This document shows positions 33,318-39,825 of a stretch of 64,000 nt of DNA, piece by piece. Position numbers and translations under genes: made by a program. The stretch's first letter is position 1, and every line of letters begins with the position of its first letter. The stretch comes from Blastocladiella emersonii ATCC 22665 (lineage: Eukaryota; Fungi; Blastocladiomycota), in the NCBI GenBank assembly GCA_025594325.1, contig JANHCV010000011.1:1426001-1490000 (forward strand). The letters run 5' to 3'. The notes under the pieces were generated by a model. That model did not search any database. It was not told where the DNA came from and saw nothing but the letters and a program-made list of their open reading frames with translations.

Positions 33318-36272
33318 TCAGAACCGCGCGGCGTCGACGAGCGCCTGCGCGCCAGCCTTGACCAGCTTCTGCGCGGCCTCGAGCCCGCTCGTGGCCGTGG
33401 TGGCGAGGTGCTGCTTGCCGTCGACGCTCCAGACGTGGGCCTCGACCTCGATCTTGCCGTCATCGCGGCGCACCGTGTTCACGGCGACGGGGACCTGGCA
33501 CCCGCCCTGGATGGCGCGGAGGAAGTCGCGCTCGTGGTCGCACGTCAAGCGGGTCTCGGCGTCCTCGATCGCCTTGACGAGGCGGTGCATACCGGCGTCG
33601 CGCGCGCGGATCTGCACGCCAATGGCGCCCTGCGAGACGGCCGGGACCATGACGGCGGGATCGATCGGCTGGACGTGCACGCCGGCGAGGGCCTCGGTCG
33701 CGTTCGGGAGGCGCGCGAGGCCGGCGACGGCGAGGACGATCGCGTCGTAGTGCACGTCGGCAGTCGCGGCGTGGGTGCCGAGGAGCTTGGCGATGCGCGT
33801 GTTGAGGTTACCGCGGACGTCGATGATGCGGAGGTCCGGACGCGCGGCGGCGAGCTGGGCGCGGCGGCGGAGCGACGAGGTGCCAACGGTGGCGCCCGAG
33901 GGCAGGGACTCGATGGTGTAGGCGTGGCCGGCGCGCGAGACGAGGGCGTCGCGCTTGTCCTCGCGGGCGAGCACGGCGCCGAGGGCGAGCGCGGGCGGCT
34001 GCGTGGTCTCGAGGTCCTTGAGCGAGTGCTGGACGAGCGCGACGGCGCCCGACTGCAGCGCGACCTCGAGCTCCTTGGTGAACAGACCCTTGTCGCCGAT
34101 CTTGGCCAGCGCGACGTCGAGGATCTTGTCGCCCTTGGTCATGACGCCGTCGATGCGGAAGCGGTGCGCGGGCTGCGGGTTCCATCCGCTGGTAGCTGAC
34201 GGGGCGGGCGTGCGCTCGGCGGCGGCGGCCTGGTGCGCGACGAGGGCCTTGTGCACGATCTCGGCCTGGGCCATGGCGAGCGGCGAGTTGCGCGAGCCGA
34301 GGACAATGGTCTGGGCCTCCTCGACAAAGGCGCCGACGGACTCGGTCGACATGTCGAGCTTGGTGCCGTGGCCGAGGTTGACAATGTAGCGGTGCTTGCC
34401 GAACTCGCGGATCATGGCGCGCACCTTGGTGCGGATGTTGTCGAGCGGCTCGTACATGACGTCGGGCTCGAGGTTGCCCTGGAGCGTCATGTAGGGCCCG
34501 GCGGCGGCGCGCTGCTCGGCGGGGATGCCGGCCCAGTCGATGGAGATGGCGTCGTACAGCGTCTCCTTGACGATGCGGGCCGTGGCGAAGTTGGCGCCGC
34601 GCGGGAACACGGTCATGGGGATGTGCGGGTGCACGGCCTTGACCCTGCGGGCGATATCGGCGAGGTAGGGCAGGGCAAACTCGTAAAAGTCGGTCGGCCC
34701 GAGGTCGACGGCGTTGGACTCGAAAACCTGCACGATGTCGGCGCCGGCGTCGACCTGCTTGCACAGGTAGTCGATGGCGACGTCGGTGCACTTGCGGAGC
34801 AGCAGGTGGGCCCACTCGGGGTGCATGTGCAGCCACTTCTTGGCGAGGTCCTTGCCGATCATGTAGGCCATGAGGGTCCAGGGCGCGCCGCAAAAGCCGA
34901 CGAGGGCCTTGTCGCGTGGGAGCTGGGCGCGGGTGAGGGTGAGGGCGTCGTAGACGTGCTGCAGGATGGCGGGCTGGTAGGCGAGGCGCTCGATGTCCTC
35001 GAGGGTGCGGATCGGGTGCGGGAAGAAAGGACCGGGCTGCATGATGAGCTCCATGCCGAGAGCCTGCGGGATGGTCATGATGTCGGAAAAGATGATGGCG
35101 CAGTCGACATTGTACCGCCACACGGGCTGCAGGGTGATCTCGGTGGCGATGGCGGGGTCGGCGGTCATTTCGAGGAAGTTCTTGTCGCCCTTGACCTGGC
35201 GGTACTCGGGGAGGTAGCGGCCGGCCTGGCGGTGGAGCCAGACGGGCGGGCGCGGCACGCTCACGCCGCGGAGCGCCTGCACGAACAGCGTCTCAATGTA
35301 CGTGTGGCGCGGGGCGATGGTGGCAGTCGCCATGGAGCGAGCACGGCGGGGTGCGGCAGCGACGAAATCGGTGCCCTGGGCGGCGACGGTCGCGGTCGGG
35401 AAGGCGGCGTTGGGCGGCAGGCACGCGGCGGGGAGGCCGGCCGCGAACAAGGCGAGAGCCAGCTCGCCGCGACGGGCAGCGACCCAGGCGTCCTCCTCGG
35501 GCGTCAGGGGCGCTGGCGGGGGCGGGAGGTCGAAGGTGGCGGGCGGCGAGACGTAGTCGGCCTCGCCGAGCTCGACGGCCTGGACGGCGGCGGCGTGGCG
35601 CGCAACGGTCGCGATGTAGGCGGTGAAGAGCGGGATCACGACGGCGTGGGCGAGGCCAGCCGAGTCGGTGCCGGCGAGCGGCAGGTCGGCGCGCAAACCA
35701 CCGATACCGCGGTAGGCCTTGCCGTCGGCGGCGCGGAAGGCCTCGTCGGCAGCGCGCTTGACGGCGGCGTAGTCGGCGCTGTGGGCGATGGCAACGTCAC
35801 GGGCGGCCGTGTGCCAGTCGAGAGCATCGTCCTCGTTGATGAAGTAGGGGAGCAGCTCGGCCTCGACGCGGAGGGCGGCGGTGGGCACGGACGAGGCGGC
35901 GACGGGCGAAGCGGGCTTCGGGGACGCCCCACTGTTCTTACGGCCACTGCCACGACGGTTGCGCGACTGCTGCTTCGGAGAGGCCGAGGGGCTCGCCTCA
36001 GCGGGTGCGGCGGCGGCAGCGACCTCGACCTTGGACCACGAGATGCGGACGGCGGAGGCGAGGGGCGACTTGGGCCAGCACACGAGGTGGGCGACGTCGG
36101 GGGTCGGGCGGACGAGGACGGCGCGCTCGAAGAGGGACGAGGCGGTCAGGGCGGCGAGGTCGACGAGGTCGCGGTCCGCGGCGGCCGAGACGGCGGCGGC
36201 GAGGCGCGACGCTTCCTTGGTGGCCTCGAGGGCGACGATCGCGGCGGCGATCTCGGAGACGAGGCTCGGCAT
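33318..36272 (-). CDS. Heme-pathway fusion (984 aa): degenerate HemF/CPOX-like domain + uroporphyrinogen decarboxylase + porphobilinogen deaminase
   Basis: One uninterrupted ORF. UROD: PVWLHRQAGRYLPEY, IIFSDI, GFCGAPWTLMAY, NLGHG. PBGD: LGSRNSPLAMAQ, TKGDKILD, KGLFTKELE, HSLKD, GTSSLRR, RGNLNTR, GGCQVP. N-part: LLPYFINEDDALDWH, RGIGGL, RRG. Confidence 0.93.
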   Translation of the reverse strand: MPSLVSEIAAAIVALEATKEASRLAAAVSAAADRDLVDLAALTASSLFERAVLVRPTPDVAHLVCWPKSPLASAVRISWSKVEVAAAAAPAEASPSASPKQQSRNRRGSGRKNSGASPKPASPVAASSVPTAALRVEAELLPYFINEDDALDWHTAARDVAIAHSADYAAVKRAADEAFRAADGKAYRGIGGLRADLPLAGTDSAGLAHAVVIPLFTAYIATVARHAAAVQAVELGEADYVSPPATFDLPPPPAPLTPEEDAWVAARRGELALALFAAGLPAACLPPNAAFPTATVAAQGTDFVAAAPRRARSMATATIAPRHTYIETLFVQALRGVSVPRPPVWLHRQAGRYLPEYRQVKGDKNFLEMTADPAIATEITLQPVWRYNVDCAIIFSDIMTIPQALGMELIMQPGPFFPHPIRTLEDIERLAYQPAILQHVYDALTLTRAQLPRDKALVGFCGAPWTLMAYMIGKDLAKKWLHMHPEWAHLLLRKCTDVAIDYLCKQVDAGADIVQVFESNAVDLGPTDFYEFALPYLADIARRVKAVHPHIPMTVFPRGANFATARIVKETLYDAISIDWAGIPAEQRAAAGPYMTLQGNLEPDVMYEPLDNIRTKVRAMIREFGKHRYIVNLGHGTKLDMSTESVGAFVEEAQTIVLGSRNSPLAMAQAEIVHKALVAHQAAAAERTPAPSATSGWNPQPAHRFRIDGVMTKGDKILDVALAKIGDKGLFTKELEVALQSGAVALVQHSLKDLETTQPPALALGAVLAREDKRDALVSRAGHAYTIESLPSGATVGTSSLRRRAQLAAARPDLRIIDVRGNLNTRIAKLLGTHAATADVHYDAIVLAVAGLARLPNATEALAGVHVQPIDPAVMVPAVSQGAIGVQIRARDAGMHRLVKAIEDAETRLTCDHERDFLRAIQGGCQVPVAVNTVRRDDGKIEVEAHVWSVDGKQHLATTATSGLEAAQKLVKAGAQALVDAARF

Positions 36273-37151
36273 GGTAAAGGGACAGCAGCAGGGACCCTGG
36301 AGGTGCGTGGAGAGTGAGCGGGCGGGTTCAGCGGACCGAGGGATCGCGGGAGCAGCTGCAGCAGCAGCAGCAGCAGGCGCGGGAGCAGGGCGACGGACGC
36401 GGACAGTGTTGGGCGCGATGGTCGGTGCGGGTAGCGCGGCGGCGACGACGCCAGACGCGGCGAGGACGAGGCCGTAGGCCAGCGAGCAACAGAGCGGGCA
36501 CGGCGCCATGAAGAACCGGACTAGTGACGGTCTAGACGCTCACGGCTGTCGGTGGATGGTCGCCGCCGTCAGTCGAGCGCTCGTCGTTGCCGTTGCCGTT
36601 GCTGTCGAGGGCCGTGCGATCCGGCGTGGCAGCGCTCTGCTGCTGCTGCTGCTGCTGCTGCATCCGTGTGATCCATGGCAGGGGCGGGGAATACTCACCT
36701 AGCGACGATTCAGAGTCGGGCGCTACGAGGTGCAGCTCGACGATCGGTCCGGCGGTGGGTGAGGGGGAGAGAGAAGGGATCGCGGAGGGCAGCAGCGCTT
36801 AGGATCGGCTTGGTTGGTCAGGCCAGCTCAGAGGTTCAGAGCCGCGGGCCGCGCGACAGCCGAGACCCGCGTATGAGGTTTTCGCAAGGTTTTCGCCCCG
36901 CCGTGACCTGATGTTGATCGCAAAACCGGGTCACATGCGCCGGCCGAGCACTGCGTCGTGACGAGCGGCCTGGCCACTCTACGCTCGAGGCGCTCGCTTC
37001 CGCTGCCCTCCAGTCGCTCTACCACGTAGCTCACACGAATCGACACCACGGAACTCGCTGCATCGTGCCCGCCCCCGCCCCGCCCACGCATCGACCGGGA
37101 CCGCCGACCACTTGAGAACCCGAAAACCCCGAACCGCAGCCGTAACCCATC

Positions 37152-37865: not shown

Positions 37866-39825
37866 ATGGACTCGTTCGGCCTCCCCTACGGCTCGGTCCA
37901 TGCTCGCCTCCGCGACGCCGAGCTGCGAGGCCTCTCGCGCCTGCGCCAGGGCAGTACGTCCCGTCCCCGCATCACCTTGCATATGCCTCTCGCTAAGTGT
38001 CATCGTCGTAGCGAGCACCCGCCCGCGCCTTCTCGACCTCGTCAGCAACCCGCGCATGTACCACGCCTGCGTCAACACGGCCATGGTCCCCGTCCCGACC
38101 TACGCCGCCCACTACGCCCCCAAGGCCACGGGCACCCGCTTCCTCGCCACCGCCGACGAGGCCGGCACCGTGTGCGTGCTCGACACGGACAACGACCCCG
38201 AGTCCATGCTCGTCGCCCGCTTCACGGCCCACGCCAACGCCATCTTTGACGTGCAGTGGCACCCGACCGACCCGTGCATCGCCACCGCCTCGGGCGACCA
38301 GACCGTCGTGCTGTGGGACCTCGAGCGCCAGTCGTCGGTCGCGCTCTTCTCGGCCCACAAGTCGTCGGTCCGCTCCGTCGCCTTCAACCCCTTCGACCCC
38401 GCCATGCTCGCCACCACCTCGCGCGACGGCTCCATCATCATCTGGGACACGCGGTGCGCCGGTGTCGCTATGGCCAACGGCGCCGGGACCGCGTTCGGCG
38501 CCGCGAACGTGATCCGCCACGCGCACGCCCTGCCCGGGTCCGGCTCGTCGGCCGCCGCCATCTCCGTGTCGGCCGCCGTCTTCACGCGCGAGCGCACCGT
38601 GGCGAGCGCCGGCGCCGGCGACGGCGTGGTGCGCGAGTGGGACGTGCGCAAGCTCGGGTCGCACAACAGCCGCGTGCGCGCGAGCCCCGCGGCCGCGTCG
38701 TGCGACCTGACCGAGGGCCGCCGCGCGCGCCGGTTCGGCCTGACGCACCTGGCGCTCGATGCGCTGCGCGACACGCTGTACGCGGTCGGCATGGACTCGC
38801 GCGTGTACGCCGTAGACGCGACGACGCTCCAGCCGCTGCGCGTGTACGGGTCGCGCCACTTCACGCCGTCGCTGTACACGCGCGCGTCCGTCGACCCGTC
38901 GGGCGCGTTCCTGGCGGTCGGGTCGACGCAGCACAATGCGCTGCTGTTCGAGACGGCGCGCCCGGACCGCGCCCCGCTCGCGCTGCGCCACGGCCACACG
39001 GCCGAGGTGTCGTGCGTGGCCTTCTCGCAGTCGTCGGTCGCCGTGCGCCTCGCCACGTGCTCGGACGACGCCACGGTGCGCATCTGGCGCGAGGCGCCCG
39101 ACGACGCCGACCGTATCCGCAACGCCGGCGCCGCGTCCGCTGGTGACGCTGACCTCGCGTTCAAGTCGTGGGCGTGCGCCGAGGTGGCCGACGACGCGCC
39201 CGCCGAGTTTCCGGACGCGTGGGACCGCGCCGCACACGGGCCCGACGACCCGCACATGGCGGCCGCGCTCGAGCAGGCGGCGGCGGCGGTCGCTGCCATG
39301 GACGTGGACAAGGTCCTCTCGTCGCCCGCCCGCGCGCCGTCGATGCCCGAGCTCGTGGCGGTACACCGGCCCGCGTCGTTTTCGCTGTTCGCGTCGTCCA
39401 ACTCCAGCTCCAACTCGGGCTCGGCGTCGAACCTGCCCGCGCTCGCGCCGAGTGCCGAGGGCGACCACGTCGTCGCGCCCCCTCCACTGCCCGAGGTGCC
39501 CGCCCAGGTACCTGCCGACGTTCCTGCGACGCCCGCTCCCGTCGCCGTGGCACCCACATCCAGCACGGCGGGTGAGGGCAGCACAGCAGGCCGCCGGAAA
39601 CGCACGCTGCTCGACTTTTTCGGGTCTCCGCAGGCGGTTGCGGCCGCCGAGTCGCCGTCCCGCGCGGCTGCTTCGTCGTCCTCGCGTCCAAGCGCGGCCC
39701 GCAGCGCCGGCAACGGCAGCAGCGCGAGCAAGCGGCGCGTCACCGGGTCTGCGTGGACGCCGTCGCGGAGCATGTCGGCTTCCTCGAGCTCATCCTCGTC
39801 GTCGTCCAAGCGCGCCAAGCGATAG
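37866..39825 (+). CDS. CDT2: Cdt2/DTL (DCAF2) WD40 substrate receptor; one short intron near 5' end
   Basis: AHANAIFDVQW, ATASGDQT..LWD, AHKSSVRSVAF, SRDGSIIIWDTR, DGVVREWDVR, GHTAEV, TCSDDATVRIW; basic C-tail. Confidence 0.85.

Follow-up and report, generated by a model that had tools for sequence, protein, structure and literature searches.

A three-domain heme-enzyme gene in Blastocladiella emersonii

The window analyzed here is a 64,000-nucleotide stretch of the Blastocladiella emersonii ATCC 22665 genome (contig JANHCV010000011.1, positions 1,426,001 to 1,490,000). The open reading frame (ORF) listing of the window holds an uninterrupted minus-strand ORF of 1063 codons at 33318-36509, which encodes a fusion protein. 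A domain related to coproporphyrinogen oxidase (CPOX, also Hem13 or HemF) is followed by uroporphyrinogen decarboxylase (UROD) and porphobilinogen deaminase (PBGD). The original prediction for this locus was of a cryptic, catalytically dead HemF-like domain N-terminal to UROD and PBGD, based on six peptides. All six were found in this ORF in the predicted order (Table 1). The interval originally assigned to the domain, 35440-36272, spans the likely start codon to the last recognizable CPOX helix.

The public protein (P0001, 984 aa) is identical to ORF residues 80-1063 and begins at the Met at 36272. This Met is most likely the real start codon, since the homologs of other genera begin at the same helix. 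Those of Paraphysoderma, Sorochytrium, and Coelomomyces begin directly at the helix after it. No targeting peptide was found before the likely start. Because no homolog carries the 79 codons upstream of this Met, they are probably 5' untranslated sequence that was kept open by chance in GC-rich DNA. Three DNA runs of the source sample yielded contigs that match the gene with 0 differences and 0 indels. In the short-read contigs of two of these runs, the GC-rich middle of the CPOX-like domain (about 35429-35681) is missing; the long contig of the third run bridges it with 0 differences.

UROD and PBGD are apparently intact, since both exceed their equivalog cut-offs and have their catalytic motifs. 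The UROD part scored 341.6 bits with TIGR01464 (hemE, cut-off 302.95), and the PBGD part scored 258.7 bits with TIGR00212 (hemC, cut-off 164). The PBGD motifs include GSRNSPLA, HSLKD, and the cofactor-Cys motif GGCQVP.

The N-terminal domain is made up of conserved CPOX segments and variable inserts. In the first segment, LFERAV matches CPOX VFEKAG, and LVCWPKSP...RISW stands where CPOX has IHPKNP...HxNxR. The best-conserved core contains ELLP (Asp282 to Glu in human CPOX numbering), NEDDALDWH, AADEAF, YRGIGG (Arg332 kept), and YIATVARH. The helix AWVAARRGELALAL (model helix 258-277) is the last segment with sequence similarity to CPOX. The tail that follows, about 45 residues before UROD, has no sequence match to the CPOX C-terminus and is aligned to it only structurally, in the model described below. 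Its PRRARS(L/M) motif is conserved among blastoclads.

The 46-aa insert is without secondary structure in the model, at a predicted local distance difference test score (pLDDT) of about 50-58. It is present in Allomyces and missing in B. britannica. This disordered insert, residues 106-172 of the L006 gene product in Allomyces, carries a basic motif that reads NRRGSGRK in the window (a protein kinase A-like RRxS) and KRRGGRK in Allomyces.

Upstream of the fusion gene lies a divergent gene for ribosomal protein L11. Beyond it is a gene for a WD40 protein.

Table 1. Features of the fusion gene and its surroundings, in window positions
Feature	Position	Strand	Description
Whole gene as in public model	33318-36272	-	984 aa + stop; single exon: CPOX-like domain, UROD, PBGD
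PBGD (hydroxymethylbilane synthase) domains	33339-34307	-	ORF residues 735-1057; PF01379 + PF03900
UROD domain	34311-35291	-	ORF residues 407-733; PF01208, 355 bits; motifs RQAGRYLPEY, IFSDI
Tail in place of CPOX active-site loop (Asp400-Arg413)	35292-35441	-	PRRARS(L/M) leads directly into UROD
Pro-rich variable insert, then helix AWVAARRGELALAL matching a CPOX helix	35442-35591	-	hhalign ends at residue 246 of 281 of P0123
Best-conserved CPOX core	35592-35861	-	ORF residues 217-306; PF01218 match to profile positions 125-217 of 295; PDB alignments; residue table
Low-complexity Ala/Ser/Pro/Arg insert	35883-36020	-	46 aa; loop between HxNxR strand and Asp282 strand; contains NRRGSGRK
CPOX-like N-terminal helices and first four strands	36021-36272	-	Alignment, hhalign, model secondary structure, residue table
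In-frame upstream extension	36273-36509	-	79 codons; Ala/Pro-rich; no counterpart in any homolog
LTPEED...LALAL	35448-35507	-	Quoted peptide
FTAYIATVARH	35595-35627	-	Quoted peptide
YRGIGGLRADL	35682-35714	-	Quoted peptide
YAAVKRAADEAF	35736-35771	-	Quoted peptide
ELLPYF...ARDV	35793-35858	-	Quoted peptide
LVCWPKSP	36063-36086	-	Quoted peptide
Ribosomal protein L11 gene	37152-37592	+	Divergent from fusion gene
WD40 protein gene	37900-39825	+	641 aa; long Ser/Ala-rich tail

Relationship of the N-terminal domain to CPOX

Similarity of the N-terminal domain to CPOX was found with several kinds of profile. With the whole protein, the Pfam family PF01218 (Coprogen_oxidas) was matched at E 1.2e-7 and 31.2 bits, just under the gathering score of 31.8. 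With the N-terminal part alone, the match rose above this score (E 2.3e-8, 33.5 bits). Relatives scored 26.6-91.2 bits; the Paraphysoderma domain reached 91 bits (E 6e-26) over profile positions 8-239 of 295 and matched human CPOX (2AEX) with an E-value of 1.9e-15. The NCBIfam HemF family was matched at E 2e-6, and the best PDB sequence matches of the N-terminal part were CPOX chains. For a profile-profile comparison, seven blastoclad N-terminal domains and no other sequences were used as the query. In hhalign, this profile matched a genuine CPOX of 281 aa (P0123) with a probability of 98.7% and an E-value of 1.8e-16 over 194 columns, from the first helix through the equivalent of RRGRYVEF. 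Judging by these alignments, residues 80-400 are a true CPOX homolog, with a similarity far beyond chance. The N-terminal part is related to CPOX and yet no ordinary CPOX, since it scored 25-27 bits with the HemF equivalog NF003727 and did not reach the cut-off of 297.

Next to the profiles stands the predicted fold. An AlphaFold model of residues 80-400 had a mean pLDDT of 77, with a well-predicted core. When this model was used with Foldseek, all 19 of the 19 significant matches were CPOX, with E-values down to 9e-9. VIA-align gave Z scores of 20.9-22.5 over 236-242 residues against CPOX structures, and the second structural family, the bilin reductases, followed at Z 11-14. Since CPOX sequences sat in the input alignment of the model, the fold result is supportive and not independent. 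An ESM Atlas feature search with the domain was uninformative (scores 0.63). Sequence profile, profile-profile comparison, predicted fold, and the phylum-wide architecture described below thus all bear out the cryptic domain of the original prediction.

Loss of catalytic residues

Human CPOX numbering was mapped onto the alignment and agrees with the residue numbers of a mutational-scan preprint and with the 2AEX alignment. In that scan of CPOX, His258 is catalytic, Arg262 and Ser244 act in ligand recognition, and Asn260, Asp282, Arg332, Asp400, Gly402, and Gly406 are intolerant to substitution. The active site is located between the sheet and helices alpha9-alpha11, with residues 400-413 as an active-site loop (10.64898/2026.07.02.735896).

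Each of the seven blastoclad genes has substitutions at Ser244, Asn260, Arg262, Asp400, and Gly406. In the window protein, His258 has become Arg, Asn260 Ser, Arg262 Ala, and Ser244 His. The active-site loop, Asp400-Arg401-Gly402...Gly406, has no sequence counterpart; Ala/Ser/Thr and Pro occupy the aligned positions. Sequence similarity to CPOX stops before this loop and a variable Pro-rich stretch follows. The disordered 46-residue insert adjoins the former catalytic strand. That HxNxR and DRG have been lost, as originally claimed, is thus seen residue by residue across the blastoclad genes. Other positions were retained. Asp282 is Glu in six of the seven genes and Arg332 is kept in six, which is compatible with ligand binding and would be insufficient for catalysis. 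The equivalents of Pro249, Glu291, His297, Asp320, and Gly335 are invariant in all seven.

As read from the alignment, the parts needed for oxidative decarboxylation are gone, and positions facing the macrocycle and one propionate remain. Because His258 (in most of the genes), Asn260, Arg262, Ser244, and the active-site loop were lost, we strongly infer that CPOX activity was lost as well.

Distribution among blastoclads and sanchytrids

Six more blastoclad proteins, representing five named genera, have the same three-domain architecture. Three-domain proteins occur in Blastocladiella britannica, Allomyces arbusculus, A. macrogynus (two copies), A. javanicus, Sorochytrium, Paraphysoderma, and Coelomomyces, and in one JGI sequence. 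The window protein and that of B. britannica are 75% identical over UROD-PBGD. The Allomyces and B. britannica genes are intronless. Seven genes share a conserved in-frame junction, PRRARSL...PRPSYIE, and four of these genes come from independent intronless loci. It is proposed that the arrangement predates the radiation of the Blastocladiomycota.

Relatives of the N-terminal domain were difficult to find by other means. A word-indexed search with the window domain returned only the window's own protein. An exhaustive phmmer search of 1.84 billion representatives returned, apart from one bacterial CPOX fragment (E 1e-3), only two relatives, both from blastoclads. The divergence of the domain is too great for single-sequence searches. 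A search with the Paraphysoderma domain found one ordinary CPOX (P0123) and zero stand-alone blastoclad CPOX proteins. A metagenome scan with the domain profile found only ordinary HemF genes of the alphaproteobacterial type. None of the homolog, phmmer, Paraphysoderma-query, and metagenome searches found an intact CPOX fused to UROD-PBGD. In one Allomyces protein (P0121, 324 aa), the C-terminal domain of an AMP-binding enzyme is linked to a fragment of the CPOX-like domain that includes the insert; P0121 is either a chimeric or partial gene model or a second partial copy.

The UROD-PBGD fusion is also found in sanchytrids, where the proteins have an N-terminal extension of 150-180 aa. A profile comparison of these extensions gave no significant match (E 0.39), a model of the sanchytrid extension was of low confidence (pLDDT 53), and a fold search was meaningless. 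The N-terminal extension of P0008 gave E 1e-3 only. Outside blastoclads and sanchytrids, two environmental eukaryote contigs alone showed the UROD-PBGD join. As a rare genomic character, it is a candidate link between Blastocladiomycota and Sanchytriomycota, and the entries behind it are P0009 and P0012 (EukProt), L001:5392-7917, and L002:3516-6446. As such, the join supports a sister relationship of the two phyla.

Conservation and selection

Between genera, no part of the protein evolves faster than the CPOX-like domain. Its identity to the window protein is 19-43%, compared to 58-85% for UROD and 51-67% for PBGD. Within Allomyces, the four genes differ by a synonymous distance (dS) of 0.31-0.36. 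The ratio of nonsynonymous to synonymous distance (dN/dS) among them is 0.014-0.024 for the CPOX-like domain, 0.023-0.035 for UROD, and 0.03-0.07 for PBGD. The domain has 78-91 synonymous and only 4-6.5 nonsynonymous changes in these genes, and its low-complexity insert has 10-21 synonymous and 0 nonsynonymous changes.

Discussion

We propose that the N-terminal domain is probably a non-catalytic pseudoenzyme domain derived from CPOX, with a tetrapyrrole-binding or scaffolding role, fused to intact UROD and PBGD. The gene would thus produce one cytosolic polypeptide in which the degenerate domain precedes two working enzymes. In fungi the three ancestral enzymes all reside in the cytosol, as established for yeast Hem3, Hem12, and Hem13. 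The N-terminal domain would no longer make protoporphyrinogen IX. It would keep the tetrapyrrole-binding platform of CPOX and could bind a porphyrinogen, organize an oligomer, or both. By doing so, it may hold or hand on coproporphyrinogen, the reactive product of the adjacent UROD. Since CPOX and UROD are both homodimers, a role as an oligomerization element or as a dock for a partner enzyme is proposed as an alternative. The arrangement would have been upheld by purifying selection since before the Blastocladiomycota radiation.

Several observations weigh against this proposal. The input alignment of the AlphaFold model contained two real CPOX sequences, a bias towards the CPOX fold. His258 is kept in three of the seven genes (Allomyces, P0004, and Coelomomyces), and the domain could in principle be the sole CPOX of these fungi. 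It would then be a highly divergent but active CPOX, and the protein a true three-enzyme fusion, which we consider unlikely. The retention of the domain across the phylum under purifying selection would fit an active enzyme, as would the Glu at Asp282, the kept Arg332, and the His258 of three lineages. In addition, the only CPO-like expressed sequence tag reported for B. emersonii was called "putative oxygen-independent" (PMC1550239). An active enzyme would nevertheless have to work with Asn260, Asp400, and Gly406, all intolerant to substitution, replaced in every one of the seven genes, along with Arg262 and Ser244. It would also lack a sequence counterpart of the active-site loop and its strand, carry 46 disordered residues beside the former catalytic strand, and score 25-27 bits where the HemF equivalog demands 297. 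A further point against our proposal comes from Blastocladiella. Between the window gene and that of B. britannica, dN is 0.58 for the CPOX-like domain, 0.105 for UROD, and 0.28 for PBGD. The rate of the CPOX-like domain is thus about 5 times that of UROD, which means a modest constraint in this lineage. Its nominal dN/dS of about 0.6 is an overestimate, because dS is near saturation at a third-position G+C content (GC3) of 0.89-0.94. The domain is under purifying selection that is very strong in Allomyces and modest in Blastocladiella. Constraint on the domain contrasts between the two lineages, being extreme within Allomyces (L006-L009) and loose between the two Blastocladiella species (the window and L010). 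A slowly decaying relic, tolerated as an N-terminal appendage or spacer with no further role, would explain this nominal ratio, the fast evolution between genera, the lineage-specific low-complexity inserts, and the sanchytrid extensions of only 150-180 aa with no demonstrable CPOX similarity. We find such a relic quite improbable, given the Allomyces dN/dS values, the confidently folded core of the model, and the reading frame and five invariant residues kept in seven genes.

Another explanation is that the domain took on a different tetrapyrrole reaction, such as acting on hydroxymethylbilane, either alongside uroporphyrinogen III synthase (UROS) or as its substitute. The fusion joins steps 3 and 5 of the pathway and skips step 4, bilin reductases that bind linear tetrapyrroles also have the CPOX fold (Z 11-14), macrocycle-facing and propionate-binding positions were kept, and constraint in Allomyces is very tight. 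Against this, the domain is very plastic between genera, with no conserved new motif that resembles an active site and no positive sign of catalysis, and a new reaction therefore seems highly improbable to us. Only a little more credit goes to a re-purposed tetrapyrrole module that supplies or controls the missing step, either UROS-like on hydroxymethylbilane or as a built-in porphyrinogen chaperone, and this we regard as very unlikely. An artefact has an almost negligible chance of explaining the data. Long spurious ORFs are common at about 68-70% G+C, and a gene model could misjoin an upstream gene or pseudogene to UROD-PBGD. Misjoining was rejected since the same in-frame junction is conserved in seven genes, including the four independent intronless loci, and the DNA contigs show no indels. 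Chance similarity was rejected on the E-values of the Pfam, 2AEX, and hhalign matches. A simple truncation of CPOX was also rejected, since the structural alignment reaches the CPOX C-terminus, though this is seen only with a model whose input alignment included CPOX sequences.

A non-catalytic CPOX-derived domain in this position would be a pathway-internal pseudoenzyme domain in a new heme-enzyme fusion. No description of the fusion or of the degenerate CPOX domain was found in full-text searches of the literature and in supplements, and no table of blastoclad heme genes was found there either. PF01218 matches are already precomputed in public data for blastoclad fusion proteins. The public names of these proteins are only "uroporphyrinogen decarboxylase" or "hypothetical protein", and the architecture was overlooked because public annotation says only "uroporphyrinogen decarboxylase". 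The movement of reactive, easily oxidized porphyrinogens between heme enzymes is still poorly understood. Here, a natural protein joins two heme enzymes to a copy of the next enzyme that has been stripped of its catalytic residues. Since this copy has kept residues that face the ligand and is under strong conservation in Allomyces, the protein offers a ready-made system for studying substrate hand-off, scaffolding, and pseudoenzyme function. The less probable explanations would also have consequences. If these fungi have no other CPOX, this would be a CPOX that works without residues thought to be essential. A non-homologous replacement of UROS would mean that an old fold had yielded a new enzyme, and a re-purposed module would make the polypeptide a self-contained cytosolic heme "metabolon".

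Among the closest known systems is CPOX itself (Hem13/HemF, PF01218). The blastoclad domain is homologous to it over about 230 of 281-300 residues, with the same order of helices and strands and a predicted alpha/beta/alpha sandwich with a flat antiparallel sheet. The motifs ED(D/E)A..H, A/C-D-(D/E)-.F, and RGIGG were kept. CPOX is a free homodimeric enzyme, whereas the blastoclad domain is the N-terminal domain of a 984-aa protein, has two inserts, and has lost His258 (mostly), Asn260, Arg262, Ser244, and the whole 400-413 loop. The bilin reductases PcyA, PebA/B, and HY2 are the second-best structural matches and bind a tetrapyrrole on the same kind of sheet platform, but at 6-10% identity they have no sequence similarity to the domain, and they match far more weakly than CPOX.

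Other heme-pathway steps are known to be joined in one polypeptide. Bacterial HemC-HemD, HemD-CysG, HemA-HemC, UROD-ferrochelatase, and UROD-UROS fusions are examples, and many of them were among our matches. The CPOX-like, UROD, PBGD order of the blastoclad protein occurs in none of them, nor does a degenerate CPOX. The closest parallel for the degenerate domain may be found in yeast Ura2, a CPSase-DHOase-like-ATCase protein in which the DHOase-like domain is dead and the real DHOase is encoded separately. By analogy, both would be fungal fusions within one pathway that keep an inactive copy of another enzyme of that pathway, presumably for structural reasons. The pathway and the fold are different, and the dead domain of Ura2 lies between active ones, whereas the CPOX-like domain of the blastoclad protein is N-terminal.

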